From Guillardia theta CCMP2712 (Eukaryota; Protista; Cryptophyta), in the NCBI RefSeq assembly GCF_000315625.1, contig NW_005434453.1:23414-70736 (forward strand): 47,323 nt of DNA. The letters run 5' to 3'. Numbering within the stretch: the stretch's first letter is position 1; every line of letters starts with the position of its first letter. The notes under the pieces are model-generated. The model was not told the DNA's origin, did no database searches, and worked only from the letters and a program-made list of their open reading frames with translations. Positions 9,791-41,197 of the stretch are shown in pieces. A program made the position numbers and the translations under genes.

Positions 9791-9848
9791 CTGCTTTTCG
9801 CTTAGCAGAGAAATTCCAAAGCAAGTTCTTGTTGAGCTCCGTTGAAGA

Positions 9849-12800
9849 TCAATCCTGTAAAGCCTCGGGATGTGACACCGTGGCCTTGGCCTGAGAAAGG
9901 TACTCCCCCGTCTCCTCCGCCGTCCGCGATGGCGCGGCTCCTGCGTCCTCGTGCGCGTCGACGTCCTCGTCGGGGTGCTGGGCCTGCCCCTTCTCGCTCC
10001 CAGGGCCCCCATGCCCACCGTCCGCGACGTACCTGCTGATCCCTCCAGCTATCCTGACCAGCGTCACAAAGGAGAGGATCCGGCCGATCATCATAGTCTT
10101 CGTGCCTTCCTCTTTGCAGCGGTAGTACTGCATCCAAACGCGCCCCATGCAGTGCGTATAGACGAGGTTCCTCTGCTTCGTCGCCTGCAGGGACGTAAAC
10201 TCCAGCACGCTCTTGGATCCCTCTCCTGCTGCTCGCGTGTACCACCTCACCGTCTGCTCCACAGCGTCTGACAGGCTCATGCTCGAGCCCGAGCAAGGCC
10301 CTATGGAGAGCTCGTGGACGGTGAAGCAGCGGCGGACACAGAGGAGACGCGGCGGATCGACAGCTCCTGCGAGTCGGCGTGTAGGTCAAGCTGTCGTCGC
10401 ACAGGAGCTTGACCACGAGGTCGACGGCAGATACCGTCCTGTCGACGTCAGCCGTGGCCTTGGCGTGAGAAAGGTACTCCCCCGTCTCCTCCGCCGTCCG
10501 CGATGGTGCGGCTCCTGCGTCCTCGTGCGCGTCGACGTCCTCGTCGGGGTGCTGGGCCTGCCCTTCCTCGCTCCCAGGGGCCCCCATGCCCACCGTCCGC
10601 GACGTACCTGCTGATCCCTCCAGCTATCCTGACCAGCTTCACAAAGGAGAGGATCCGGCCGATCATCATAGTCTTCGTGCCTTCCTCTTTGCAGCGGTAG
10701 TACTGCATCCAAACGCGCCCCATGCAGTGCGTATAGACGAGGTTCCTCTGCTTCGTCGCCTGCAGGGACGTAAACTCCAGCACGCTCTTGGATCCCTCTC
10801 CTGCTGCTCGCGTGTACCACCTCACCGTCTGCTCCACAGCGTCTGACAGGCTCATGCTCGAGCCCGAGCAAGGCCCTATGGAGAGCTCGTGGACGGTGAA
10901 GGAGGCGGCGGACACAGAGGAGACGCGGCGGATCGACAGCTCCTGCGAGTCGGCGTGTAGGTCAAAGCTGTCGTCGCACAGGAGCTTGACCACGAGGTCG
11001 ACGGCAGATACCGTCCTGTCGACGTCAGCCGTGGCCTTGGCGTGAGAAAGGTACTCCCCCGTCTCCTCCGCCGTCCGCGATGGCGCGGCTCCTGCGTCCT
11101 CGTGCGCGTCGACGTCCTCGTCGGGGTGCTGGGCCTGCCCCTTCTCGCTCCCAGGGCCCCCATGCCCACCGTCCGCGACGTACCTGCTGATCCCTCCAGC
11201 TATCCTGACCAGCGTCACAAAGGAGGGGGTCGGGCCGATCATCATAGTCTTCGTGCCTTCCTCTTTGCAGCGGTAGTACTGCATCCAAACGCGCCCCATG
11301 CAGTGCGTATAGACGAGGTTCCTCTGCTTCGTCGCCTGCAGGGACGTAAACTCCAGCACGCTCTTGGATCCCTCTCCTGCTGCTCGCGTGTACCACCTCA
11401 CCGTCTGCTCCACAGCGTCTGACAGGCTCATGCTCGAGCCCGAGCAAGGCCCTATGGAGAGCACGTGGACGGTGAAGGAGGCGGCGGACACAGAGGAGAC
11501 GCGGCGGATCGATAGCTCCTGCGAGTCGGCGTGTAGGTCAAAGCTGTCGTCGCACAGGAGCTTGACCACGAGGTCGACGGCAGATACCGTCCTGTCGACG
11601 TCAGCCGTGGCCTTGGCGTGAGAAAGGTACTCCCCCGTCTCCTCCGCCGTCCGCGATGGTGCGGCTCCTGCGTCCTCGTGCGCGTCGACGTCCTCGTCGG
11701 GGTGCTGGGCCTGCCCTTCCTCGCTCCCAGGGCCCCCATGCCCACCATCAGCGACGTACCTGCTGATCCCTCCAGCTATCCTGACCAGCGTCACAAAGGA
11801 GGGGGTCGGGCCGATCATCATAGTCTTCGTGCCTTCCTCTTTGCAGCGGTAGTACTGCATCCAAACGCGCCCCATGCAGTGCGTATAGACGAGGTTCCTC
11901 TGCTTCGTCGCCTGCAGGGACGTAAACTCCAGCACGCTCTTGGATCCCTCTCCTGCTGCTCGCGTGTACCACCTCACCGTCTGCTCCACAGCGTCTGACA
12001 GGCTCATGCTCGAGCCCGAGCAAGGCCCTATGGAGAGCACGTGGACGGTGAAGGAGGCGGCGGACACAGAGGAGACGCGGCGGATCGACAGCTCCTGCGA
12101 GTCGGCGTGTAGGTCAAAGCTGTCGTCGCACAGGAGCTTGACCACGAGGTCGACGGCAGATACCGTCCTGTCGACGTCAGCCGTGGCCTTGGCGTGAGAA
12201 AGGTACTCCCCCGTCTCCTCCGCCGTCCGCGATGGCGCGGCTCCTGCGTCCTCGTGCGCGTCGACGTCCTCGTCGGGGTGCTGGGCCTGCCCCTTTCTCG
12301 CCCCCAGTGCTGTTGTCCCTGATCCATGTGCTCATCCCTCCAGCCTTTCTGATGAGTTTTAGAAGCTCACGTTTATGGCCCACCATTAACTTGTATGTGC
12401 CTTCCTCCTTGCAGCGAAAGCTATCAATCGCAGCCTTCCCCTCAACAAGCGATGCAACGAGCTTCTTTTCTTCCTTAGTCTGCAGGGACGTAAACTCCAG
12501 CACTCTTGTAGATCGCCTTCCTGCTGCTCGCGTGTACCACCTCACCGTCTGCTCCACAGCGTCTGACAGGCTCATGCTCGAGCCCGAGCAAGGCCCTATG
12601 GAGAGCTCGTGGACGGTGAAGGAGGCGGCGGACACAGAGGAGACGCGGCGGATCGACAGCTCCTGCGAGTCGGCGTGTAGGTCAAAGCTGTCGTCGCACA
12701 GGAGCTTGACCACGAGGTCGACGGCAGATACCGTCCTGTCGACGTCAGCCGTGGCCTTGGCGTGAGAAAGGTACTCCCCCGTCTCCTCCGCCGTCCGCGA

Positions 12801-22538: not shown

Positions 22539-23717
22539 CTAGATGACATCGAATCTCATCGGCATCTTGAATTGCTGCAGGTGAGCAATGGCCACTTGAA
22601 AATGAGCTCCCTTGGTGACAACAACGGTGTCACCATCTGCATCACTTACATACGAAGATCATCACTTCTCGTGCTCATTGCCAATGCCAAGCGTTCTACC
22701 TGTAAGTAATCTTCATCGTCTGAAGATCCTTCGGTCCCGCCAAAGTCTACTTAACACGACAGCAGTCATGACTTGATGCTTCGGATAATGCTGGACACGA
22801 ACCTTGATTTCAGCCAGAAGGTCTTGATAAGAAGAGACCACAGTCCTCTTGATATCCGATCCAAAAGCGATCTTCACAGGCGTCTCTGAATTCAATTCCC
22901 CCCTCTCCTTGCGTTCCCTCTCCCCCTTCTCCTTGCGCTCCTTCCCCCCTCTCCTTGCGCTCCTTCTCTTGCTTCTCCTTGCGCTCCTTCTCTTGCTTCT
23001 CCTTGTGCTCCTTCTCCCCCTTCTCCTTGCGCTCCTTCTCTTCCTTCTCCTTGCGCTCCTTCTCTTGCTTCTCCTTGCGCTCCTTCTCTTCCTTCTCCTT
23101 GCGCTCCTTCTCTTCCTTCTCCTTGCGCTCCTTCTCTTCCTTCTCCTTGCGCTCCTTCTCTTCCTTCTCCTTGCGCTCCTTCTCCTCTGTCTCCTTGCGT
23201 TGCATCTCTTGCAGCCGTTTCTTGCAATGTCTGCAACCGCACTACCAACAGCACACGTCACAACAGATTCACTCGCATCACTCAAACCAATCATACACCT
23301 CGTCATAGTTACCCCATCCTTGAGCTTTGCAGCACTGAGTCAACCAATCCAATCAATACAAATATCATCTCTACAGACCATGCGCTTTGAAACATGATCG
23401 ATGACTTACATTCTGTGAGTTTCCCAGTGCATAATGTAATCAAAACAAGGTCAGATCAGCAGGAAGATATGTGATGGTGTCAATCTCTTACGCAGCACTA
23501 GTAGATCCATACCAGATGTTGCCATCCGTTGATCAAGACATACCAGAAAAAGCAAAATGAATGTCACTCCCTACCAACCGCATGTTTCAATCGAGATATT
23601 ACTTACATACTATCCAGTTCCATCACACCAGTCCATCCGAGCGAAAACAAAACAATCCCAAGATTACATGTCAGCCATATCGTCCCCTGACCGCATTTCA
23701 GCATCGTCACTTGCCCG
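22539..23717 (-). pseudogene. Gene A: microexon-encoded Cys-rich N-terminus + K/E coiled coil + PB1 domain; 5'-truncated, one frameshift
   Basis: Exons 23715-17 (R), 23607-09 (Y), 23492-97 (CC), 23410-12 (N), 23299-23334 (CCKAQGWGNYDE), then from 23241 CGCRHCKKRLQEMQRKE.... The spliced C-terminus PVKIAFGSDIKRTVVSSYQDLLAEIKTLAGPKDLQTMKITYSDADGDTVVVT...MRFDVI* has the PB1 basic Lys and acidic OPCA motif. Frameshift near 22950. Confidence 0.7.
22900..23195. repeat. 24-bp coding tandem repeat (KEKEEKER)n
   Basis: CTTCTCCTTGCGCTCCTTCTCTTC units; charged coiled-coil or single-alpha-helix-like peptide. Confidence 0.9.
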
Positions 23718-23775
23718 CTATACCGCACCATCCACAGTACATCCGAGCAAATACCGACACATACACAAAAGAATC
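23335..23775 (-). other. Microexon/intron array 1 (truncated)
   Basis: AG|CGG|GCAAGT, AG|TAT|GTAAGT, AG|TGCTGC|GTAAG, AG|AAT|GTAAGT. Confidence 0.7.
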
Positions 23776-26279: not shown

Positions 26280-29200
26280 TTACACTCGACGGAACTCCAC
26301 CAGCAACTCAGGGTATGTCTGTCGGCGATCGTAGACGATGAACTCCCTGTACTTTTCCAAGCACGCTGAAGGATGCGTATCCTGTGTCACCCCAATCACT
26401 GAGTCATGCAGGCGGTCGCTGCCCGGCATTACTGGTGGTCGCCTCGCGTTGTTCATCGCTTGCAGGGCCTCGTAAGGCGTTCCCAGCACAGCTCGCACCA
26501 CAAACATACGACAGATCCCGCGGCTGTCTGGCGTGCAGTACTCGTCGCTCTTGCTCGAGTTCTCAGCTAGGTAGATCCCAGCTCCAAACAAGCCTCCTAG
26601 ACTGCAGACCCGCTCGTCAAGCCCAGCCTTCAAGATAACATCCGCCATGTCGTGTTTGGTGCCATGAAACAGAAACACCTCGTTGCTGGTCTTGTCCTGT
26701 AGGAGCGATCTCTTCATCCAATCGCTATAAGTGCGTACCTCTGTCTTGGGATGTCGTTCGCCCTGTAGCATCATAAGGTAGCCTATAACCTTTCGCTGTA
26801 GGGCATATGCCGACCACAACTCCGAGTGCTCTATACGGAAGACGCGCTCAACCTTGTAGCCTTTATGCTTCAATCCCAAGTTGTCTCTTCCTTGGCCGAT
26901 GTACTGCGGTTTACATGTTGATGTCAACAGCTCTTGTATTCTATCCTTCCACTCGCTCGTTACGTCGACTTTGATGTTTGTGCCAGCAGAGCTTGCTAGA
27001 CCCTGCCAATAGCGGGGAGGTGTAAACACGGCACAACCGTACGCAAGAAGCAGCTTCTCTGTCTCTAAATCTCTCGCTTTCTGCTCAAGTACGGCCTCTT
27101 GCTTGCTCAAGGTCGTCAGCTCCGACTGCACCTGACGCTTTTGTTCCTTCAGAAGCCGCTCTTGTGTGCTGAGCTCTGCCTTCTCCTTCGGGAGTTGCTC
27201 CTTCCTCAGGTTGAAGTGGTATTCCAGTTTCCTTCCTTGAGAGGTGAATGCTCGCTGCTGCTCCACTAGCTGCCTCTCCTCAGACTGCACGTGCTCCATG
27301 CGCTGCTTTATGTCTCTCTCCCTCTCTGCTAGTTCCTCTTGTCTCCTCATGAGCAGCGCAAGCTGTCGATCATGCTCTTCTCGCATGGCAGTGCGCTCCT
27401 TCTCGAGATGTTCGCGCTCGAGTATCATGGCATGACTGAAGTATCGATGTGTGAGAGCTTCGGCTGATGAAAGTCTCTTGCTCGGAACAGGATCGAGAAG
27501 TCTAGCAACAAGATCCTTCGCCTCGCCTTGAAGCCCAGCAAGCAAAGCCATGACGTCGTCACGATGAGTCGGTCTTATCGGAGCTTCTGTCAAGACCTCA
27601 AGCATCACCAAGCCAAACGAGTACATGTCTGATTTGTGCGAGACTTTCATCTTGCCTGTGGAAGGGTTGGTGAGCTCCGGAGCCATGTAGTTCAGCGTGC
27701 CCACGGCAAGAGCAGTGGTCACTGTAGCTGCCAACTCCCTCGCCCGGTCCTCCTGCTCCTTGGACACGTCGAAGTCTGCAATCTGCGGCTCTGCATGCTC
27801 GTCCTTGGAAGTCATCAAGATGTTTGCGGGCTTGATGTCGCAGTGGATGATCCGATTCTGACGCAGGTGCTCGAGCCCCTGCAGCACCTGCATGAGCACC
27901 CTGTGCTTCTGCTGCTCGCTCGGGTCCACATCCTGCATCCACCTACAAAGCGTTCCTCCGACAAGGAAAGGCATCTTCAGGTATCCCTTCATGACCATCG
28001 TGCGAAGCTCGATCTTCTCCTCAATAAAGGCGCTGATCAGCTTCACAATGCAAGGGTGCTCCAGGCGACGCAACATGCTTGCTTCACGTAGGAAATGTTT
28101 TCTGCCGCTCTGACAGACGGTAAGGTTGTACTCCTTGATGACATATTCCTGGCTCCCTTGACTGACGAGGATGACATTATGTCGGGCCCCCATCTGACCA
28201 ACTTGCGACAGACGATCAACGACTGTGAAAATGTCGAGCTTTTCATGCCCGATCAAAACATCACTGTCACCCGCGCCAGCCCCAGGATCTAGCTCTTCCT
28301 TCAACTCCTTCATGTATTCTGGATAGTGACAGACCACACTCCAGAGTCTTTCCTCCAACCTCTCAAGCTCCCTGGTACTTGCCATGAGCTTCACTCTGAC
28401 CACATCCGTCTTGTCCTCGATCTCCTGGCACGCCAGCTTCTTTCTCTTGCTCTTCTCAAAGTCAGATCTAAGATCATACAGCTCGTCTTCCAGATTCTCA
28501 ATTGCTTGCTTGAGCTCTGCCCGGGTGTCCATCAAACGTCGCGGGTCTTCCATACTCTGAAATGTCTTACTGTATCTTTCCAATCCTTTGACGTTTGATA
28601 TCGCACCCAGTTCAAACAACACAGTTTGTGCCCATGACAAAGCCTCTTTTTGGATTGAAAGTAAAGAGCTGAGGGGAAACGATTCGATCAAAGTCGTGTC
28701 TATCAACACCTCCTCCTCAGACACAAACGCGGCTTCAAGAGCCATGTGCGTCTCCGGAAGCACATCTTCCAGCTTGTTCTTGTCACCAATGCTCAACACA
28801 CTAACGCTTCCATCCAGCAAGCAAGACAGCTGACGAAGACTATCAGCATATCGGCTTGCGATCTTCACCCTCTCCTCCCTTGCCGATGCCAATTTCCCAT
28901 TTACCATCTCAACCCAAGCTGACACCATTGATTTTGTTTCGTTCAGCTGATACTGAAGATCATCTGTAGACAAACAGAACGGAGCTGCAGCTTTCGACCC
29001 CCTCGTATCAAGATCACAGCAGCGTAAAACTGCCTCCACGTCTGTGACAAACCTTTCCAACACTTGCTTGTACTCCAATAGGCGGGCCCGACAACCACCT
29101 TCGAGTGCAGCAACGAGCTCGTTGGATGCCTGAATCAGTGCAATCCTCGTCTCGTTCCGTCTGTTTATGCTCTCACTCTCTTGCCTGGCTCTCTGCATCA

Positions 29201-31544
29201 ACTCAGCTTGCTTGGAATCAAGCTCATCCTGCAATGACCGCACTTGACTCCAAGCCTGCTGCATACGCATGTACGCTTCGTGACCCTCGCTGCTGAATAT
29301 TTCCGTCAACTCAACCAGCAATCTGAGCGCGTCCTCTCCTGAGGCGAGCTCTTGGCTGCATATCTTCTCCGTCAGGTCGTGCAGCGACAACATCGCACGA
29401 CCATGCAGGCCCAACGACGACCCATGCCGCATGGCGACCTTGACCGCAGATCGAAGAGTGCTGCACTTGTTCATGTTTTCAGAGCGCTCCCTCTCCCGCT
29501 CATCTCTTTCCTTTTGCTCCTGCTCCTCCTGGTGTCTGGCTTGTGTGGCCTGCTCTTCTCGTTTGAGCCGTTCCTTGCAATGGCTGCATCCATACTAGCA
29601 ACATCATCCGTCAGTCGCATCAAAGACACACTTCAAGCACCTCATCGTATGCCGACCATCCTCTGGACTTGGAGCACTAAAAACCGAAGTCAATCGCCAT
29701 ATTCAGCAAAAGAGCCATCGCTCGCAATCTGCTCAGCTTACATTCTGTCATTGTTGTTTTCACCAGCAATGAAAACCAACGCAAACACAAAGTCAGGAGA
29801 GCATCAAAGAGAGTGAATAGGAAAGTCTTACACAGCACTGATGGAAAAAATAGATGTTTGAACCACAGTCATAGGATAACGCAAGACATATGTCAGTTCC
29901 TATGTCCCCTGACCGTATCTTTCATGTTTGTTACTTACATACTATCCAGCCACATTCACGACCCATGTGATGGTAATCCGAAAGAAAGACAAAACTCGTC
30001 AGTCCCTATGAACCCCTGACCGCATCTTTCATCATCGTTACTCACATGCTATCAAGCCCCATTCACGACCCGACCGATGACAAACCGAAAGAGTTGCAAA
30101 ACCAAATTTCAGCCATCGTTCCCTGACCACACCTTTCATGTTTGTTACTTACAAGCTTTCCAGCCCCATTCGTAGCCAATCCGACGATCCACAAAATTGC
30201 AAGGAACATGTCAGTCCCTATCGATCCCTGACCGCATTTTTCAATCAAGATACTCACAATCTATCCAGCCCCATTTTGTTTCACCGGGTGAAAACAAAAC
30301 ACACAAAAAGTAGATGTCAGCCATATCGTTCCCTGAGAGCATGGTACATATTTCGTCACTTACCCACTATCCAGCATCATCGACAGTCCATCCGAGAAAT
30401 AACCGATAAGATTTGCAAAATGAAATGTCAGCCAATCGTCTTCTGATCGCATCATTGAAAATGCTACTCACTCCCTATCCAGATAATCGTTTCAAATCCC
30501 GGCAAGTAACCGATGGGAGTGATTTCGTTTTCGATAAAACACGTCAGCCAATCGTCCACTCAGCACATCATATGATATGAAAAAACACTTACTCCCTTCG
30601 AAGACAGATTCCATCCAAACAAGCCAGGAAAGAGTAGCAATTGCAAATCAAATGTCAGCCAACCGTCCCTTGAGGGAATGATCGGCTTCACCGGGCAAAA
30701 CTTTGCTTCGCCAATGTGTTCTTCCTCCTTGTAAATACAATTCTTGCAGGTGCCATCTTCATCAAGATGGAAGGTCTACATGATTCGTCAGTCTTGTCGT
30801 TCCCTGATGTTTCATTATTGTTACTTACATTCTATCCAGCCACATTCATGACCCGTCCGATGAAGCACTCACAGAATTTCGATGAAAAACCCACAGATTT
30901 GCGGAAAACACGTCAGCCAAACATCCCATGACCGCATCCTTCATGATTTGTAACTCACCGTCTATTCAGTCCAATCAATGACCCATCCGATGACAAAACC
31001 GAAAAATACACCAACATTGTCAGTCAGCAAATCGTTCTTTGACCGCATTTCCATGATTGTTGCTTACCAGCTGTCCAGTCCAATCAACAGCAGATCCGAT
31101 GAAAAAACCGAAAAATGCACGAAATTCGTTAGTCCTATGGATCACTCAAGGAATGATCGGTTTTACGGGGCAAAACTTCGCTTCGCCAATGTGTTCTTCC
31201 TCCTTGTAAATACAATTCTTGCAGGTGCCATCTTCATCAAGATGGAAGGTCTACATGATTCGTCAGCCCGATCGTCCTCAAACAAGATGATTGCGAATAC
31301 TACTCACTGCCTATTCAGACAATTGTTTCCAATCCCAGCAAGCAACCGATGGGAGTGATTTTCGTTTCGAAACAAGGAAAAACATGTCAGCCAACCAACC
31401 GTCCCCTGATCGCATCTTTCATCATCCTCACTTACATTCTATCCAGCCCCATACATATCCCAACCGACGTGAACAGACCGAAAAATTCACGAAGAATGTA
31501 AGTCCCTATCGTCCCCTGACTGCATTCTTCAATCAAGATACCGC
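26280..31544 (-). CDS. Gene B: zinc-finger/microexon N-terminus + coiled coil + Ser/Thr kinase + coiled coil + PARP-family ADP-ribosyltransferase
   Basis: Main exon 26280..29594 has VIKEY, HCDIKPANIL, DFD and GTLNYMAPE (kinase) and LFHGT, GIYLAENSSKSDEY and REFIVY (PARP H-Y-E). Upstream exon 29641-29676 (CSKSRGWSAYDE) and the microexons splice in frame. Start codon not located. Confidence 0.85.
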
Positions 31545-31630
31545 CTGTAAGCCGCATAGGCATAGTGATGTCAGCAAAAGCTGTCCCTCAAGACTTACTC
31601 ATCTTACGCATCTGCTGCTGTCTTCGGTAC
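29677..31630 (-). other. Microexon/intron array 2 (14 single-codon exons, one 6-nt exon, two 84-nt zinc-finger exons)
   Basis: Each ~100-120-nt unit reads (Y/A)AG|NNN|GTRAG on the minus strand (one GTATC donor), usually with a CTGAC branch site. ZnF exons at 31167-31250 and 30692-30775. Confidence 0.8.
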
Positions 31631-32500
31631 CGGGGCAGACCTCGATCTAAAGCATCTCCAGTAAGAGGGTAATCAATCCAACACTGATGTGGTGTGATGA
31701 GGGACTAAAATGAAGGAGCAAGTGAGGACGTGCAGGAGGAAAGTCAGCATATCCATCACACATGCAGGTCAAGCAAACAAGCATCGCATCGCTTATGCTC
31801 CCTTGCCTTGCAGTCTTGACAGTTCCTCGGCATGACGGGACAGCGGAGGAAAGGCTGTTTTTTTGACCCGCAGGGAGGTGAGCAGGGGGTGGACAGGGCT
31901 CAGAGCAGGGGGTCCAGATCTGGTCCAGATGGAGTCGGGGTCGATGTGGCTCCACCAGCTATCGTGGTTACACACAAGTCTAGCATTCTTGGTGACAAAC
32001 GGGTTGAAAGGGGGCGGCTGAGTAAAACATGATGGGGACTCTAATGCCGGGCCGTCAACCTCCGGGGCCCGGGGAGCCACCTGGGGACCATCGACGCAAG
32101 TCGAGAGTCGATCTCTTAGCCCCTCGTTGACTCCTTGCCCTCATTCAAGAGAGGCCGAATCTCCTCCTCCGGCGGCGGATCTGCCGGAGCTCTTCCTGGA
32201 TGGTGATGAACTCTGAACCTCAAGGAGACGATGACATCCTGCGTGGGGGAGCAGGAGCAGGAAAGCAGGAGGCGATGGAGAGCCGGAGAAGTTGATTTAG
32301 GAAGAAGAAGCAAATCAGAGAGAAGAGACAGCGAAGGCCGGGCGGAAGCAGCTGGATACAGGACGCGGCTGATATGGTAGCGGCCATCACCAACTTGACG
32401 AGATTTGATTCATATGGGGCCCTCAGTTTGACCTGATACTTTGTTGAACACGGTCTGCTTCTGCCTCCTGACCTTGTTCCTTGCCCTGCACGTGAGCCAA

Positions 32501-33810
32501 CTCAAGCACGTCAGAGTCGACCTCTGCTCGAGCACGTCAGAGTCGTCCTCTGCTCGAGCACATCAGAGTCGTCCTCTGCTCGAGCACATCAGAGTCGACC
32601 TCTGCTCGAGCACATCAGAGTCGACCTCTGCTCGAGCACATCAGAGTCGTCCTCTGCTCGAGCACATCAGAGTCGTCCTCTGCTCAAGCACGTCAGAGTC
32701 GTCCTCTGCTCGAGCACATCAGAGTCGACCTCTGCTCGAGCACATCAGAGTCGTCCTCTGCTCAAGCACGTCAGAGTCGTCCTCTGCTCAAGCACGTCAG
32801 AGTCGTCCTCTGCTCGAGCACATCAGAGTCGTCCTCTGCTCAAGCACGTCAGAGTCGTCCTCTGCTCGAGCACATCAGAGTCGACCTCTGCTCGAGCACA
32901 TCAGAGTCGTCCTCTGCTCAAGCACGTCAGAGTCGTCCTCTGCTCAAGCACGTCAGAGTCGTCCTCTGCTCGAGCACATCAGAGTCGACCTCTGCTCGAG
33001 CACATCAGAGTCGACCTCTGCTCGAGCACATCAGAGTCGTCCTCTGCTCGAGCACATCAGAGTCGTCCTCTGCTCAAGCACGTCAGAGTCGTCCTCTGCT
33101 CGAGCACATCAGAGTCGACCTCTGCTCGAGCACATCAGAGTCGTCCTCTGCTCAAGCACGTCAGAGTCGTCCTCTGCTCAAGCACATCAGAGTCGTCCTC
33201 TGCTCGAGCACATCAGAGTCGTCCTCTGCTCAAGCACGTCAGAGTCGTCCTCTGCTCGAGCACATCAGAGTCGACCTCTGCTCGAGCACATCAGAGTCGT
33301 CCTCTGCTCAAGCACGTCAGAGTCGTCCTCTGCTCAAGCACGTCAGAGTCGTCCTCTGCTCGAGCACATCAGAGTCGACCTCTGCTCAAGCACATCAGAG
33401 TCGTCCTCTGCTCGAGCACATCAGAGTCGACCTCTGCTCAAGCACATCAGAGTCGACCTCTGCTCAAGCACATCAGAGTCGACCTCTGCTCAAGCACATC
33501 AGAGTCGACCTCTGCTCAAGCACATCAGAGTCGTCCTCTGCTCGAGCACATCAGAGTCGTCCTCTGCTCGAGCACATCAGAGTCGACCTCTGCTCGAGCA
33601 CATCAGAGTCGACCTCTGCTCGAGCACATCAGAGTCGTCCTCTGCTCGAGCACATCAGAGTCGACCTCTGCTCAAGCACATCAGAGTCGACCTCTGCTCA
33701 AGCACATCAGAGTCGTCCTCTGCTCAAGCACATCAGAGTCGACCTCTGCTCAAGCACATCAGAGTCGACCTCTGCTCAAGCACATCAGAGTCGACCTCTG
33801 CTCAAGCACA
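32501..33810. repeat. 26-bp minisatellite, ~50 units
   Basis: Unit CAGAGTCG(A/T)CCTCTGCTC(G/A)AGCAC(A/G)T. Stop-free on the + strand, producing ORF 32441..33898. Confidence 0.95.
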
Positions 33811-33898
33811 GTCAGCCAGCTGCTGTAACTTGTTCGACGATTGCGATTCGAGAGCCTTAGTTGCACCACCTGAGCCCATTGTGCATCCGAATGGTTAG

Positions 33899-34302: not shown

Positions 34303-37300
34303 TCAAGCTAGATCATCAGGGTTGTCAATGCCTGAACGTATCTTTGACTGCAGCAGGCTGATACGGTCAAGAATGCTGTTGAGCAGGTCCTTTTGCAGAT
34401 GTAACGACCTGAGAAACGGGTGCTCCACTGGCTCCACGCATGTCAAGGCCATGTCAACCGCTACCTCATGAAATACGACGCCTCCCCGGTAAACCCTCGC
34501 CTGCACTGCTGCCACCAGCGCCTCCAGCCCTGACACATGCAAACCACCACGGTCCTTCTCTTGCTGCTGTTGCTCTTGCTGCTCCCTCTTTGCTTGAACC
34601 TCCAAGGGCTTTGAGAATGACGCGAGATACGTCCAGTCGACCTTGACCTTGTTGGCAGCTTCACTTGTCTCCTTCTCTAGCTCCGCAATTCTCTTCCACC
34701 AGTCTTCACCCCCCTTGTCGCCCTTCCAGCCTGACTCTGACTCCAAGTCCTTTGAGTCTCGACTTGCTTCATACAGCACCGGCACCAGCACAGGTATGAT
34801 GTACTTCCCTGCCTCACACGCCCGAGCAAACTCTCTCCTGCAGTTGCCGCTCTTGACGTACTTGTCGCTCATAAAGACTACAAACACCTCGCAGCGAGAC
34901 ACCCCGAGCTCCATCTTCTGCATGTGATCTTCCCCGGGGTTGATCCCTCCCTCCACGTCGAACCAGCACTGCAGGCTTGTCTGCTCCTCGATCCGCCGCT
35001 TCACCTCCCTCACCATCTTCTGCGTCGAGTTGTCGTGCCCCCACTGGTAGCTCAAGAACACCTGCGGCGGCGTGACGTCCAGCACGTCCATCTCCCTCTG
35101 ACATCCGTCGCAGTAAATCTTAGCCGTCAGGTCGCGAGCGAGCATGCTCAAGCACTTGGGTCGGCTGAAGAAGTGCGGGACTCTCTTGTCCTTCAAGCAA
35201 GACGGACACGGGGAGCTCGAGCCATTGAACGCCAGCACCTCCTCCACGGTTGTCGTATGACCCCTTGTGCAAGTGATTGCTTTGATCATGATCTTGTGTT
35301 TGATGACATCTTCCTGCTCCAGCTCTTGCTGCATGTCTGTCATACCCTTCCTTTCTTTATCTAGCGCTGCCTTGATCTCCGACCGATCAAACCTGCCCAC
35401 GGCTCGATCGCCTTGGGAGGCAGGTTGAGACTCAGACCTATCATGCAAACAAGCTTGGCACAGAAGCTCGTTCTGACTGGTGACCTCGTACAAGTCTTCG
35501 AAGCTTCCTCGTCCCTGATGCAGCTTCTTGATGATGCCGTCATACAACGTTCGCATCGAGCCTTGATCATTCTCCTTGTACTGATGGAAGATCCGGTATC
35601 GCTCCATCCCTTGTATCTCCTGCGGCCACCACTCGTTGAACCTGTTCGTCAGCTTGATCTGCTTGTCGTAGTAGTCTGTCAATACGACGGGGATGATAAT
35701 TGCTTCGCTCGCTGTCAATCTGTTCCATAACTTGCTGAAGCTACTTTCTCCTTGAATGGGTCCCTGCTCATCAACACACTCTGTCGATATACACAAGATG
35801 TTCACGAGACATTCATCACCAGCACCTCCACGTTCGTCACATGGATGTGTCTGGCAAGTAAGACCTAGAGGGAGGTTCTCCGCCTTGTAAAGCTTCTTCA
35901 CCTTTCTTTCAATATCCAGCCCACATGCTCTTGACCTCTCTCCTTGCGTGAAGATCCCTATTTGCACGGCCTCTTTGCCTGAGCTCTCCTTGTCGCTTCT
36001 CCTTCGCTTCATCCCCGGGAAGAACGCCTCCAGTTGCTTCAAGTCCTCTTGCAAGTTCTCGATCTGCTGCCTCGTCGACGCATCAGCTCTCAGCACGTGC
36101 TTGTCATTGTCTTCCCGCCAGCTCACCAGCAGCGTCCGGCCCCAGCCCTTCATCACCGCCATAGAGCCGCTGCAGTCTACCTCAAAGTGTCGAGCAGCGC
36201 ACAGCACGACCAGCCTGTCGATGAAGCCTGCGGGGAAAATGTTGTACTCGCACTCGACAGATGCGCACAGCGACTGCTTGTCCTTGTCCGTCACTGCTCG
36301 CTTGTGCTCATGCGTGAACGACGGGATGATGCCGGGACACAGCAGCTCTCTGCTCTTGTTGTCTGTATCCTTCAAGTCCTTCATCCCCTCGCCCAGGAAG
36401 TGCGCCAGATCGCAGCCTCGCAGCAGAGCCACCGCCTCCTGCACCTCCACATGGCTCTTGATGAAGCCTACCTCTTCTGATCTTGATGTCTTGTCTGTCT
36501 TCGCATTGCGCCAGAAGTCGCTGTCTTGCTGGGGCCACAAGTACTCCAACATGTCCTCGTCTATGATACCCAGGTGTAGCAGCTTCTTCGTCTTCTTGGA
36601 CTTGGTCGGGTCCTGCTGGAAGAAGTCGAGCAGGTGCTCCCAGTCATGTCGCATCACGCCCTTGAACACGTCGATCATCCACACGGGATCGATGAAGACC
36701 GTGTCCTCGACGGAGTACTTGCCTAGGTCTCTCTTGCTTTGATCGGCGCTCAGCTCATGACCGAAGTACTTGAGCACGCCCATGTCGTGCAAGAAGCTCG
36801 TCGCCACCTTGTGCTCTTTCTCGCTGACCCCTGACTCTCTCAACATCTCCTTGTACTCCTCTACCTTGACGTACGAGACAGACCCTGACTTTCGCTTCTC
36901 CACAGCCTCTCTCAGTCTCAGATAAGGTCTAGGGATTCTTTCCTCCCACCACAGCAGCTCTTTTGCAGTCTTGCACACAGATCGCCGCAGCTCCTTCACC
37001 CCCTGTCCCTCAAGACAGTTCACCCGGAAGCTCTCGCCTCCGTTGATGACGTGCAACGGCAGGATATGCAAATCTTCATCCTCTGCCATCTTCTTCAGCT
37101 CCTCTTCCACACATGCCTTCACCTCCTCACACTGATCCGTCACCTCGCTCTCCCCGACAAGATCGATGTGCGTTGCTACGAGCAACACGCTCGATCCCGG
37201 CACTCGCGCTTGCGTAGCTCGCAGCCATGTAGCGATCATCATCTTCAGCTCCTCCATGCTCTGCTTGTCTCGCTTCCCCCTCACGTTCCACACCAGCAGG

Positions 37301-40300
37301 TACAAGGCCCGCCTCACGATGAAGTACTGGTTCGTCTTGGCGTAGATCTGCTGCCCCCCGAAGTCCATCACGTCACACGTCAGCCCGTCAGCGTCCTCAG
37401 GCTCCCACTCGTGCAGGTCTATCCCGATCGTCCTCCTGTCTACCTCGATCTTGTCCGCCTTGTCCTTGTCTGACCTCAGAGCTCTCAGCACGCTCGTCTT
37501 GCCTGCCTCTCCGTTGCCTATGAGGATCAGGTTGATCCGCTTGTTCGCCTCGCTGTCTCTCTTGACGCTCTGCAGGTACGTGAAAGCAGCTGCCCCTCCC
37601 TGACTGGCGATCTCAGGGGGAGGCAGCTGCAGCCTGACGCAGCTCTCACACTTGACCTCCTGCAGGCTAGACTCCATGCTGCACAGCTCGTCCAAGGGAA
37701 AGTGGGAGAGGCTGGGGTTACCGGACACGTCGATGACTTTGAAAGCAACGCCGAGCTTGGAGATCCATCGAGGCAGGCTCTTCATCCTCAGATCTCGTAT
37801 CACATATCGTTTCATCCCATCTGTCCGCAAAGACATGTTGAGCGTGCCCGTCTTGCTGTCGTAGCAGCTCCCGAGCTCTCCGCCCGACAGGAGCTGCTTC
37901 ACCTCTTCGACAGCAGAGCTATCCATCTCTTGCATCCCGAAGATGTAGTGGCACTTGACTAGGTCCAGTCTCTCGGCAAACGGCTTCATCACGTTGTTAG
38001 CGTATTTGCGGAACTTCTCGATCTTGGCGATGGCGTCCTGCCTACTGGGTCTTGACGATACAAGATCTTGCTCAAGGTTGTGCACGCAGGAACGTCGATC
38101 CTTGCAGTGCTGGCACATGATTATTTGCCTTTCATCTTCAGGTTTGCCGTCGAAGTAGCAAACGCAGCACTAGAAAAAAGATCAGCCGCAACCCAGACCA
38201 TGCCAGCAAAGACCCGAATGGCAAAATACATGTCAGCCAATCATTCTCTGAGCACATCATATGATATGACACTTACTCCCTATGAAGAACGAAACAAGGA
38301 AAAACCAGGAATTTTGAAAAACAAATTCAGTCCAATCATCCCCTGACCGCATGTTTTATGACTCGTAGCTTACCAGCTGTCAAGCCCAATCAACATCCCA
38401 TCCGATGAATATACCGAAAAATACACGGAAATCGTCAGCCAGCCAATCGTTCGGAATGACCGCATCTTTTATGATTTGTCACTTACCCACTAGCCAGTCC
38501 AATGAACATCCCATCCGATACAAAAACCGTAACATACACGAAAATCGTCAGCCAGCCAATTTTCCCCTTATCCAATCTTTCATCATTGTTACTTACATCC
38601 TATCCAGCCCAATCAACATCCCATCCGACGAATAATCGAGAAAAACACAAAATTATGTCAGCCAATCGCCCCATGAATATGACCGCAAATTTCATATTCT
38701 TCACTTACTTGCTATGCAGCCCCATTCCGTCCATCCGAGCAATAACCGGTAAGATTTGCAAAATACTTGTCAGCTCAATCATTCCCGACCACATCATTCA
38801 TTTGTTACTCACTCCCTATCCAGCCCATTAAAAAACAAACAAGCCATCCGACGACAGAACCGAAAAATGAACAAAAACAGTGAGCCAATCGTCCCCTTAG
38901 CGAATGATCGGCTTTACCGGGCAAATCGCTTTGTCGATGTGATCATCTTTGTTACAGCCACACCATTCGCAGTTGTCATTGTCGTCCGGATCGAAGGTCT
39001 ATATGATTTGTCAGTCCGATCTTCCCCTGATCACATGTTTCATCAATTGTAACTTACCAGCTGTCCAGCCCAATCAACATCCCATCCGATGCAAAAACCG
39101 AAAATACACGAAAATTGTAAGCTAATCGTTCCATGACCGCATCTTTCATGATAGTTACTTACATACTATCCGGCCCAATCAACAGTCGGTGAATAACCGA
39201 GAAAAACAACAACACAAAATTTTGTCAGGCAATCGTCCCATGCATATTTTATCATCCTCACTTACCCCCTATCAAGCCCCATTCACAATCCAGCCGATAC
39301 AAAGACCAAAAAACGCAAATCCACATGTGAGCCAATCTTTCCCGATATTTGAAGATGGTTACTTACATCCTGTGCAAGCCCCAATCGTAGCAAATCCGAT
39401 GAGAACCCGATAAAATCACAAGGTACACGTCAAATCCCTATCGTCCCCTGACCGCATCTTTCATTATTGTTACTTACATTCTATTCAGCCACATTCATGA
39501 CCCATCCGATGAGACACCACAAAAGTGCAAAGAACACGTCAGCCATATCGTCCCCTGACCGCATTTCATCATCGTTACTTACCCGCTATACCGCCCCATC
39601 CACAGCACATTCGAGCAAATACCGACACATACACAAAATAAATGTCAGTCCAATCATCCCCTTCCTGACCGCACCTTTCATCATCGTTACTTACCCGCTA
39701 TACCGCCCCATCCACAGTACATTCGAGCAAATACCGACACATACACAAAATGATTGTCAGTCCAATCATCCCCTTACCGCATGTTTTATGACTCGTAGCT
39801 TACCAGCTATCAAGCCCAATCAACATCCCATCCGATGAAAATACCGAAAAATGAACGAAAATCGTCAGCAAGCCAATACCGCATCTTTTACGATTTGTGA
39901 CTTACCCGCTATTCAGCCTCATTCACAACCCAGCCGATGAACACCCACAAGATTTGCAAAGCTACATGTCAGTTCAATCATTATCTGAGCGAACGGATGC
40001 TTACGTAGCAGAACTTTCTATCTGTGAGGTGCTCTTGTTCAAGCTTCGAACAGGTCGCACACCGTCCTTGGGCTCCAGCTTTGAAGGTAGCCTGTTGTAG
40101 AATATTAACCCAATTGTTCCCTGACCGCATCTTTCATCATTGTTACTTACATCCTATCCAGCCCAATCAATAACCCATCGGATGATAAACCGAAAAATGC
40201 ACGAAAATCGTAAGCCAGTCAGTCGTCCCCTGACCGCATCCTTCATGATCGTGACTTACCAGCTGTCAAGCCCAATCAATGACCCATCCGATGAAAAACC

Positions 40301-40756
40301 GAGAAAAATACACCAATATTGTCAGCCAGCAAATCGATCCCTGACCGCATCATATGGTATGACACTTACTGCCTATGAAGACAGATTCCATCAAAACAAG
40401 CCAAGAAAGAGTAGCAATTGCAAAGCAAATGTCAGCCAACCATCCCCTGACCGCATCTTTCATGATTGGTCACTTACATCCTATCCAGTCCAGTCAACAA
40501 CCCATTCGATGAGAAAACCGAAAAATATACGAAAAATGTCGGTCAATCGTTCCTTGATGTCAGCATCGTTGCAAATGTTACTCACTCCCTATCCAGACCA
40601 TTGTTTCCAATCCCAGCAACAAAACGATGGAAGTTGAGAAAAGAAAGCACGTCAGCCAGCGAATTGTCCCGATGATAAACCCAAAAAATTACAAAGAGCA
40701 TGTCAGTCTAATCGTTCACTGAACGAGCATATGCTGCACAGACTGATGCTTACCGC
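34303..40756 (-). CDS. Gene C: zinc-finger/microexon N-terminus + LRR + Roc GTPase + COR + CxxC region + TIR (Roco-TIR)
   Basis: Main exon 34303..38169 starts CCVCYFDG.... It has a few LRRs (IDVSGNPSLSHFP), GNGEAGKTS, RRTIGID, DFGGQ, ATHID, COR (FLHDMGVL, IDPVW) and TIR (VFLSYQW, CWFD, FVVFMSDKYVKSGNCRREF, IIPV). Microexons splice in frame. Start uncertain. Confidence 0.9.
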
Positions 40757-40863
40757 CTTCCGAATAACATCATCGCAATTCATGGCAGAGCGTAAAACAC
40801 ACAAAGTCAGATGACGCCTACTAGAAGCTACTCAAATTACGCATCTCGTGCTGTCGTCGGTAC
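38170..40863 (-). other. Microexon/intron array 3 (21 single-codon exons, two zinc-finger exons)
   Basis: Same unit as arrays 1 and 2. ZnF exons at 40005-40091 and 38918-38998. Confidence 0.8.
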
Positions 40864-41197
40864 CTTTATTGACCACGATCTGGAGAAACACAAGTAAGGA
40901 GGTCAAGAAAAGTGTTGGGAGGAAGCGAAGGAGCCGCCAAGAAAGGAGTTGAATGATGGAAGGAACAGATGCGGGGGAGCAAAGCAAACATCTCCATCAT
41001 CAAGCATGTAACTGAAGGTAACAGCATCTCATCCCAGCTGCTCCTTGCCTTGCAATGAAGGCAGTACTTCAGCATCGCTGTCGGCTTCAGAGGACTTATC
41101 GGGCAGTTATCGGGCAGTTATCGGGCAGTTATCGGCAGTTATCGGGTTGATCACTGGGCGGACCACCAGCTATCGCGGTTACGTACAGCGATACGTA

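Follow-up and report, generated by a model that had tools for sequence, protein, structure and literature searches.

Arrays of one-codon exons in a Roc-COR-TIR gene of the cryptophyte Guillardia theta

Runs of very short symmetric exons characterize the micro-exon genes (MEGs) of Schistosoma, which use exon skipping and have been linked to protein variation at the host-parasite interface (10.1101/2023.06.21.545858). Single 3-nt exons are real, and annotation often overlooks them (PMC7392893, PMC12207440, PMC8831610); named microexon cases include neuronal exons of 3–27 nt, a 3-bp exon of Drosophila hth, three consecutive exons (3/18/22 bp) of human RPS24, and plant exons of ≤15 nt. Here, we analyze a 47,323-nt stretch of the Guillardia theta CCMP2712 genome (contig NW_005434453.1, positions 23,414 to 70,736; hereafter the window), in which the minus-strand gene GUITHDRAFT_121310 carries an array of 21 units of exactly three bases ahead of a main exon with Roc, COR, and TIR domains. 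The evidence supports reading these units as one-codon exons. Exons of this length have been considered rare, difficult to splice, and solitary; in Guillardia, they come in runs, with 21 of them in this gene and several hundred genome-wide, and are joined in RNA.

The Guillardia array resembles the MEGs in that both use short exons in multiples of three, which remain in frame in any combination and are hard to annotate. MEG exons, however, mostly measure 6–81 bp (15 bp being the commonest length), are separated by introns of 0.1–5 kb, and encode small secreted proteins, whereas the Guillardia exons are exactly 3 nt long, are separated by introns of ~105 nt that form one repeated family, and belong to genes for large signaling proteins of intracellular type. 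GUITHDRAFT_121310 thus has the symmetric exons of a MEG but not its small secreted product made mostly from microexons: the 3-nt exons contribute 63 of 4164 coding nucleotides to a Roc-COR-TIR protein of 1387 amino acids. Animal and plant microexons differ in another way, as they are isolated or occur at most about three in a row between unrelated and usually long introns, whereas the Guillardia runs are split by homologous introns. Long animal introns can contain recursive splice sites, at which an acceptor is directly followed by a strong donor (YAG, GTAAGT) and the intron may be removed stepwise around an exon of zero length. The Guillardia units share this close succession of acceptor and strong donor. 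Yet recursive sites leave nothing in the mRNA, whereas each Guillardia unit leaves three bases that stay in the RNA.

A further precedent is found in the candidate immune receptors of brown algae, ROCO and NB-ARC-TPR proteins whose leucine-rich repeat (LRR) exons are shuffled (PMC3341825, PMC11378527). In both brown algae and Guillardia, a repeated, phase-compatible exon-intron cassette would expand and shuffle a variable region, and the brown-algal candidate receptors, like the protein studied here, include members of the ROCO family. The brown-algal cassette encodes a whole repeat of ~24 residues in an LRR solenoid, whereas the Guillardia cassette encodes one residue of a predicted linker between putative Cys/His knuckles. 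The original prediction of this array, made from the DNA of the window, had remarked that no comparable gene family was known. In agreement with that remark, our literature search across microexons, MEGs, introners, and ROCO exon shuffling found no description of one-codon-exon arrays.

Splicing and gene model of GUITHDRAFT_121310

Read on the minus strand between 37900 and 41100, the locus shows a repeated unit of ~105 nt, in which (G)GATAG or ACAG precedes three variable bases, with GTAAGT or GTGAGT directly behind them. A mechanical scan of the whole window for AG-NNN-GTRAG returned 44 sites on the minus strand and 6 on the plus strand, against a chance expectation of ~5.8 per strand. Of the minus-strand sites, 21 lie in 38277–40756, exactly where the original prediction had placed its triplets and each with AG before and GTRAG after it; most of the remaining 23 lie in a second minus-strand array at 29742–31438. 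Within the 21-triplet array, the triplet-to-triplet spacing is 97–113 nt, with a single gap of 168 nt. Because the units are 75–95% alike and differ by small indels, Tandem Repeats Finder detected only fragments of the array, with periods of 107–113.

Our RNA evidence consists of Logan contigs from two sequencing runs, X1 and X2, placed on the locus with their joints displayed. These contigs directly contain 14 of the 21 triplets, letter for letter as predicted; for nine triplets, both junctions are covered. All nine tested joints (flank, intervening letters, and flank) are contained in the predicted mature mRNA. In one contig, exon 2 and the first Cys/His exon are linked at joint 40091->40840 by 17 letters that are the reverse complement of (G)CG-GGA-GAT-GCA-CTG-GAT. 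Contigs 2, 3, and 5 match the locus over >100 nt with zero mismatch and therefore do not derive from paralogs. In run X1, the depth reaches thousands on the main exon, a value inflated by paralogs as the mismatches show, and is zero or low over most introns. The units have the size (≤30 nt) and the canonical spliceosomal flanks of microexons. These data support the core of the original prediction, namely that the triplets are genuine exons, joined in their predicted order and in the frame of the Roc-COR-TIR open reading frame (ORF).

The contigs also reveal intron retention. Several of them keep one intron (for example introns 6, 14, and 16) between triplets that are already joined, which suggests that the introns are not removed in a strict order. 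Intron 6 (40263–40369, minus strand) is retained in both X1 and X2, and in X1 the contig depth is ~74 for the retained form versus ~71 for the fully spliced one; slow splicing or regulated retention could produce this pattern. In a further RNA run searched as raw reads, X16, only 15 reads fell on the locus and none spanned a joint. When we queried transcript-derived proteins with the first 120 amino acids of the main exon for fragments reaching into the array, we found only one partial public model, which starts at an internal Met, and none of the Hanusia phi transcript proteins P0004–P0006 extends to the array region.

Joined in order, the 21 triplets, two Cys/His exons of 81–87 nt, two upstream exons, and the main exon form a single ORF of 1387 amino acids. 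This model has 26 exons, with the 3-nt exons in blocks of 6, 9, and 6. All 25 introns are in phase 0, a property already foreseen in the original prediction, and the exon lengths are thus symmetric. The array introns are 84–165 nt long and start with GTAAGT, GTGAGT, or GTAAGC. All coordinates of this gene are given on the minus strand.

Coding exon 1 (41049–41075, start codon 41075–41073) contributes nine residues, including a CxxC motif, before a phase-0 junction; it is placed by joint 40879->41049, present in X1 and X2, and by ORF continuity. Intron 1 (40880–41048, 169 nt) is of the GC-AG type, as the joint has CT..GC ends on the plus strand, and the neighboring gene model has a GC-AG intron at the same position. 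Coding exon 2 (40841–40879; 39 nt, 13 codons) is bounded by RNA-contig joints on both sides. Although the triplet order and frame of the original prediction are borne out, it had missed this true 5’ end, with its two additional coding exons, GC-AG intron, and ATG at 41075.

The first block opens with GCG (Ala, 40754–40756), GGA (Gly, 40586–40588), and GAT (Asp, 40478–40480), all read from the fully spliced X1 contig with joint 40091->40840. The same contig contains GCA (Ala, 40370–40372), which is also seen with joint 40372->40840, and CTG (Leu, 40260–40262), which is also delimited by joint 40091->40259. GAT (Asp, 40151–40153) completes the block, with AT between the ends of joint 40091->40259 in both X1 and X2. 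An 87-nt exon follows (40005–40091, 29 amino acids), with RNA joints at both ends and a C-x2-C-x6-H-x6-C arrangement from which we label it a putative zinc knuckle.

In the second block, CGG (Arg, 39906–39908) is represented by the CG enclosed in joint 39807->40005, which also gives the 5’ junction of CTG (Leu, 39804–39806), whose downstream intron is retained in that contig. Two further CGG exons (Arg, 39695–39697 and 39583–39585) are predicted from the sequence: both have the splice signals and preserve the ORF, and the unit of the second is 95% identical to that of the first. AAT (Asn, 39478–39480) is established by joint 39268->39477, in which the intervening AT gives AAT-GAT-GGG. Both junctions of GAT (Asp, 39367–39369) appear in one contig, with joint 39267->39366 showing CT..AC ends, and the 5’ junction of GGG (Gly, 39266–39268) is likewise seen in an RNA contig. 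Joint 38999->39163, with AG between its ends, gives TAT (Tyr, 39163–39165), CTG (Leu, 39058–39060), and the next exon, thereby defining both junctions of the CTG. That next exon (38918–38998; 81 nt, 27 amino acids), with a C-x2-C-x6-H-x5-C pattern and an RNA joint at its 5’ end, is the second putative zinc knuckle.

The third block begins with five exons that we predict from splice signals in the DNA, namely GGA (Gly, 38813–38815), CAA (Gln, 38709–38711), GAT (Asp, 38597–38599), TGG (Trp, 38487–38489), and CTG (Leu, 38374–38376). It ends with GGA (Gly, 38277–38279), for which X2 provides joint 38169->38277 with CT..AC ends, and X1 a loose end at 38277 that continues with letters of the main exon. 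The main exon (34303–38169; 1288 codons and a stop) starts with CCxC...CxxCK and matches the Pfam domains Roc (1.1e-13), COR-A (1.5e-10), COR-B (weakly), and TIR_2 (2.2e-16). The succession of Roc and COR places the protein in the ROCO family.

The triplet blocks encode AGDALD, RLRRNDGYL, and GQDWLG between the Cys/His exons. The spliced peptide of the original prediction is hereby reproduced exactly: both larger exons translate as written there, and the frame runs on into the Roc-COR-TIR ORF. The blocks are predicted to be short linkers rich in G, R, Y, L, N, W, and D that connect small, knuckle-like Cys/His exons at the N-terminus of the protein.

None of this module is present in the public annotation. 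The product of the main exon is 100% identical to GUITHDRAFT_121310, yet the public model opens with six residues from inside the last intron (38170–38276) and includes no microexons. Two sister models begin at an internal Met (MCQHCK), which corresponds to the ATG at 38118 here. Annotation has therefore missed the whole N-terminal module, and has done so across the family. This identifies a blind spot, and standard aligners cannot place 3-nt exons.

Coding signal and intron anatomy across the genome

We surveyed the 87.1 Mb of the genome (669 contigs), fetched 20 loci, and chained their sites. A strict pattern matched 49 times, compared to 2 in the control, and a two-unit periodic pattern matched 153 times, compared to 4. 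Not one of 253 triplets in 21 loci is a stop codon, whereas ~18 would be expected from the positional base frequencies (P ~7e-9). The absence of TAG could reflect avoidance of an acceptor AG, because NAG triplets are almost absent altogether (3 of 253). For TAA and TGA alone, ~11 are expected and none is observed. Exon length is always 3, whereas intron length modulo 3 is evenly distributed (54/47/47). As a negative control, plain metagenome satellites matching the same pattern carry stops in 28 of 100 units. The genome scan and stop-codon count had both been proposed with the original prediction, and they returned periodic arrays in which stops do not occur at random frequency. Its remark that the triplet is never a stop carries no significance for the 21 triplets of GUITHDRAFT_121310 by themselves (P ~0.37 under a uniform model) but is significant genome-wide. 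These results support the conclusion that the arrays are protein-coding in the Guillardia theta genome.

The introns have a median length of 105 nt and share a characteristic anatomy. Their donor is GTAAGT in 200 of 253 units. In the two array genes of the window, the last CTRAY (mostly CTGAC) lies 48–81 nt from the acceptor, with a mode of 58–59, when the next exon is 3 or 6 nt long, and only 12–16 nt from the acceptor when the next exon is long. Genome-wide, 135 of the 253 units have CTGAC at a distance of 57–61 nt from the acceptor. The 55-nt tails are nearly devoid of AG, which occurs 49 times versus 622 expected, although GA occurs 909 times; 210 of the 253 tails are entirely AG-free.

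This anatomy suggests how an acceptor and a donor three bases apart might be handled. Introns this short are probably recognized by intron definition. The near-perfect 5’ splice sites would act together with a distal CTGAC, ~58–60 nt upstream of the acceptor, and a T/G-rich tail almost without AG. With the branch placed distally, the branch-site complex on the upstream intron would stay clear of the donor 3 nt past the acceptor, and whichever AG comes first after the branch would serve as the acceptor. Human neural microexons offer a parallel: they are reported to have a longer distance from branch point to acceptor (PMC12871342), which resembles the distal CTGAC and AG-free tail of the Guillardia arrays. 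The arrays therewith offer a natural system for asking how the spliceosome copes with such closely spaced sites, and the uniform distal branch motif with its AG-free tail provides a directly testable rule. Intron heads also contain words resembling C and D boxes, but a snoRNA reading is not supported, as no Rfam family was found between 28000 and 42000 at E ≤1.

Proposed cassette evolution and alternative explanations

Cassettes consisting of a branch block, tail, codon, the head of the next intron, and the next branch block recur at 90–100% identity with different codons. Per site, the codon is 4.4–7.5 times as diverged as the ~97 flanking nt, and 12 times as diverged as the 30 nt on either side. 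Where cassette pairs are 90–94% identical over the ~97 flanking nt, 60% of the triplet sites are different, which amounts to a ratio of 7.5-fold. In some pairs, none of the three codon positions agrees even though the flanks are 97% identical, and there is almost no synonymous change. When both whole flanking introns are instead required to be ≥85% identical, eight pairs remain, of which six have the same triplet and two differ by one base. Eight pairs are too few for a codon rate, and we used the cassette-based ratio, whose pairs are not independent of one another. We propose that the arrays originated by duplication and recombination of this branch-to-branch cassette, both inside single genes and among paralogs. 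Adding, losing, or swapping phase-0 one-codon units would then alter the length or sequence of a linker while keeping the frame, and the likely role of the module would be that of an evolvable N-terminal linker or recognition region of variable length in signaling proteins of immune or cell-death type.

The contrast between codon and flank could also mean that the codon itself changes much faster than its surroundings, by diversifying selection or a directed process, and the 60% divergence with its near absence of synonymous change is what such codon-targeted variation would produce. We do not take the ratio as proof of hypermutation, since splicing constraint or gene conversion could keep the flanks similar while selection preserves the particular residue of each codon, which would leave the same contrast, and the eight pairs with the most similar introns, themselves not independent, have identical or nearly identical triplets; we regard this explanation as unlikely. 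Alternatively, the introns may be the active party. Introners, of which a genome can contain many near-identical short copies (PMC9860276, PMC12130899), might have multiplied neutrally or selfishly in a tolerant, disordered linker sequence and left the codon exons as a by-product. Indeed, the array introns form one ~105-nt sequence family with several subtypes, and flanks 4–7 times less diverged than the codon would look like young introns around older codons. But introners are dispersed over unrelated genes and often have terminal inverted repeats or target-site duplications, whereas the Guillardia family, despite its near-identical copies, is confined to the arrays: all 85 genome matches to an intron-head motif lie in array loci (~18), with 1 match in the control. 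Terminal inverted repeats score 5.5 of 20 matches versus 5.4 in the control, and adjacent triplets are identical, as a target-site duplication would make them, in 7 of 193 cases versus 10 expected. In addition, neither the 3-nt spacing nor phase 0 ever varies, the truly recent duplicates have the same or nearly the same triplets as cassette duplication would have it, and the introner survey (PMC9860276) does not mention Guillardia. The confinement to arrays and the lack of a repeat or duplication signal led us to reject a transposon origin, and we give intron proliferation in any form a low probability.

Two other explanations concern the use of the arrays. If the array were a satellite in a 5’ untranslated region or in one long intron, translation would begin at the ATG at 38118, where two paralog models indeed start, and the start of the GUITHDRAFT_121310 model inside the last intron would be of a piece with this. 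Against such a non-coding leader stand the uninterrupted ORF from the ATG at 41075, and likewise in the neighboring gene model, the absence of stops from all 253 triplets when more than a quarter of plain satellite units contain one, the conservation of the Cys/His patterns in paralogs, and the retention of the triplets in RNA. We reject this explanation as highly improbable. A different possibility is that the arrays serve to diversify transcripts, combinatorial skipping of one-codon exons providing many protein forms per gene that differ by individual residues. Phase 0 throughout would keep any skip in frame, the host genes are of immune or cell-death type, Schistosoma MEGs use exon skipping in just this way, and around the arrays the Logan contigs come in short fragments, as would be expected with several isoforms. 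Nevertheless, every displayed joint from X1 and X2 holds all expected triplets, within the limit that contigs cannot show rare isoforms, and the variation that we do see is intron retention. Combinatorial skipping as the purpose of the arrays therefore strikes us as improbable.

We consider it likely that, taken as a whole, the following account is correct: the one-codon exons are genuine and mostly constitutively spliced, they are recognized by way of a distal branch, their cassettes are of local origin, and they form an evolvable N-terminal linker. Several observations speak against parts of it. The triplets at 39695, 39583, 38813, 38709, 38597, 38487, and 38374 appear in none of the displayed joints, and Logan contigs drop rare isoforms. 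That the runs are RNA is a guess, but joints from which the introns are missing provide strong evidence of cDNA. The residues that the triplets appear to encode are known from RNA and the ORF rather than at the protein level. CTGAC is a branch site predicted from sequence rather than from mapped branch points, and 67 of 253 units contain a proximal YTRAY that could serve instead. Folding of 12 array introns gave z-scores of +2.0 to -2.0, no better than shuffled sequences and without a stable conserved structure, so that no structural aid to splicing is evident. The two putative knuckle exons fit no family: neither has a Pfam match at E ≤10, nothing useful came from Pfam searches with the Cys/His copies of the neighboring gene or the first 200 amino acids of the main exon, and membership in the CCHC zinc knuckles thus has the C-x2-C-x6-H-x5/6-C pattern in its favor and no match to a curated model. 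Finally, the proposed adaptive role is deduced from gene content and architecture.

Related arrays in Guillardia and in metagenomes

Arrays precede several kinds of signaling genes in Guillardia. Roc-COR-TIR ORFs lie downstream of arrays at nine loci, including GUITHDRAFT_121310. Kinase-PARP ORFs do so in the neighboring gene of the window and at one locus elsewhere. Two loci have a kinase-RING ORF in this position, another two a kinase ORF with a metacaspase ORF after it, and one a kinase alone. The Cys/His patterns are conserved across paralogs, whereas the number of units between the Cys/His exons varies; the longest run of triplets is 9 in GUITHDRAFT_121310 and 13 at a paralogous locus. 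That the arrays accompany TIR, Roc-COR, PARP, metacaspase, RING, and kinase domains suggests that they may mark a fast-evolving recognition or regulatory region, and possibly part of an immune or cell-death repertoire of protists.

The neighboring kinase-PARP gene (26280–31833, minus strand) is a model predicted from sequence and Pfam. Built on the same plan, its N-terminal module (29641–31833) comprises 14 3-nt exons, a 6-nt Cys-Cys exon, and a pair of identical Cys/His exons of 84 nt, and its first intron is again of the GC-AG type. Together with the main exon (26280–29594), the module forms an ORF of 1210 amino acids. A third, short remnant of a module, representing its 3’ part, lies on the minus strand at 23300–23760. 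It contains CGG (with a GC donor), TAT, a 6-nt TGCTGC exon, and AAT, followed by an exon of 36 nt that resembles its counterpart in the kinase-PARP gene.

Scanning metagenomes for a generic three-unit pattern gave at least 120 contigs (L021–L140). Fifty-six of these are AT-rich (16–27% GC in those examined; for example L025, L046, L075, and L092) and contain 459 variable triplets, with 3 stops versus 16 expected. Their introns measure ~95 nt, and the tails are again poor in AG (82 versus 349 expected). Three of the AT-rich contigs contain long ORFs, and each of the three has a same-strand TKL-type kinase downstream; the nearest named relatives of these kinases are from Funneliformis and Rhizophagus, at 52–56% identity. 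The arrays of these contigs thus appear to belong to kinase genes resembling those of Glomeromycotina fungi. Other contigs contain different intron families: L102 has 26 units over 2.7 kb in a contig of 56% GC, with the GC-rich L063 being similar; L106 has another intron family around variable 3-nt units; and L111 has ~24 units with non-homologous introns of ~60 nt. The families of L102, L063, L106, and L111 are mutually unrelated.

These matches suggest that this layout occurs more widely in eukaryotes than has been noted so far. They also raise the possibility, which we hold to be doubtful but worth stating, that one-codon-exon arrays are a dedicated device for hypervariable peptides in self/non-self or cell-death signaling proteins, evolved recurrently and independently in the cryptophyte, in Glomeromycotina-like fungi, and in further uncultured eukaryotes. 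If so, a constant cassette of tail, codon, and head would allow codons to be added, removed, exchanged, or skipped one at a time without loss of frame.

The window contains two other tandem repeats. Between the two array genes, a 26-nt repeat on the plus strand (32501–33815) extends over 50.5 copies at 95% identity and overlaps a plus-strand ORF of 485 amino acids (32441–33898). On the minus strand at 10251–12548, the context TGGAGCAG-ACG-GTGAGGTG occurs five times with a period of 575–576 nt, in or near the ORFs at 9802–12145; this long repeat is unrelated to the 105-nt arrays.

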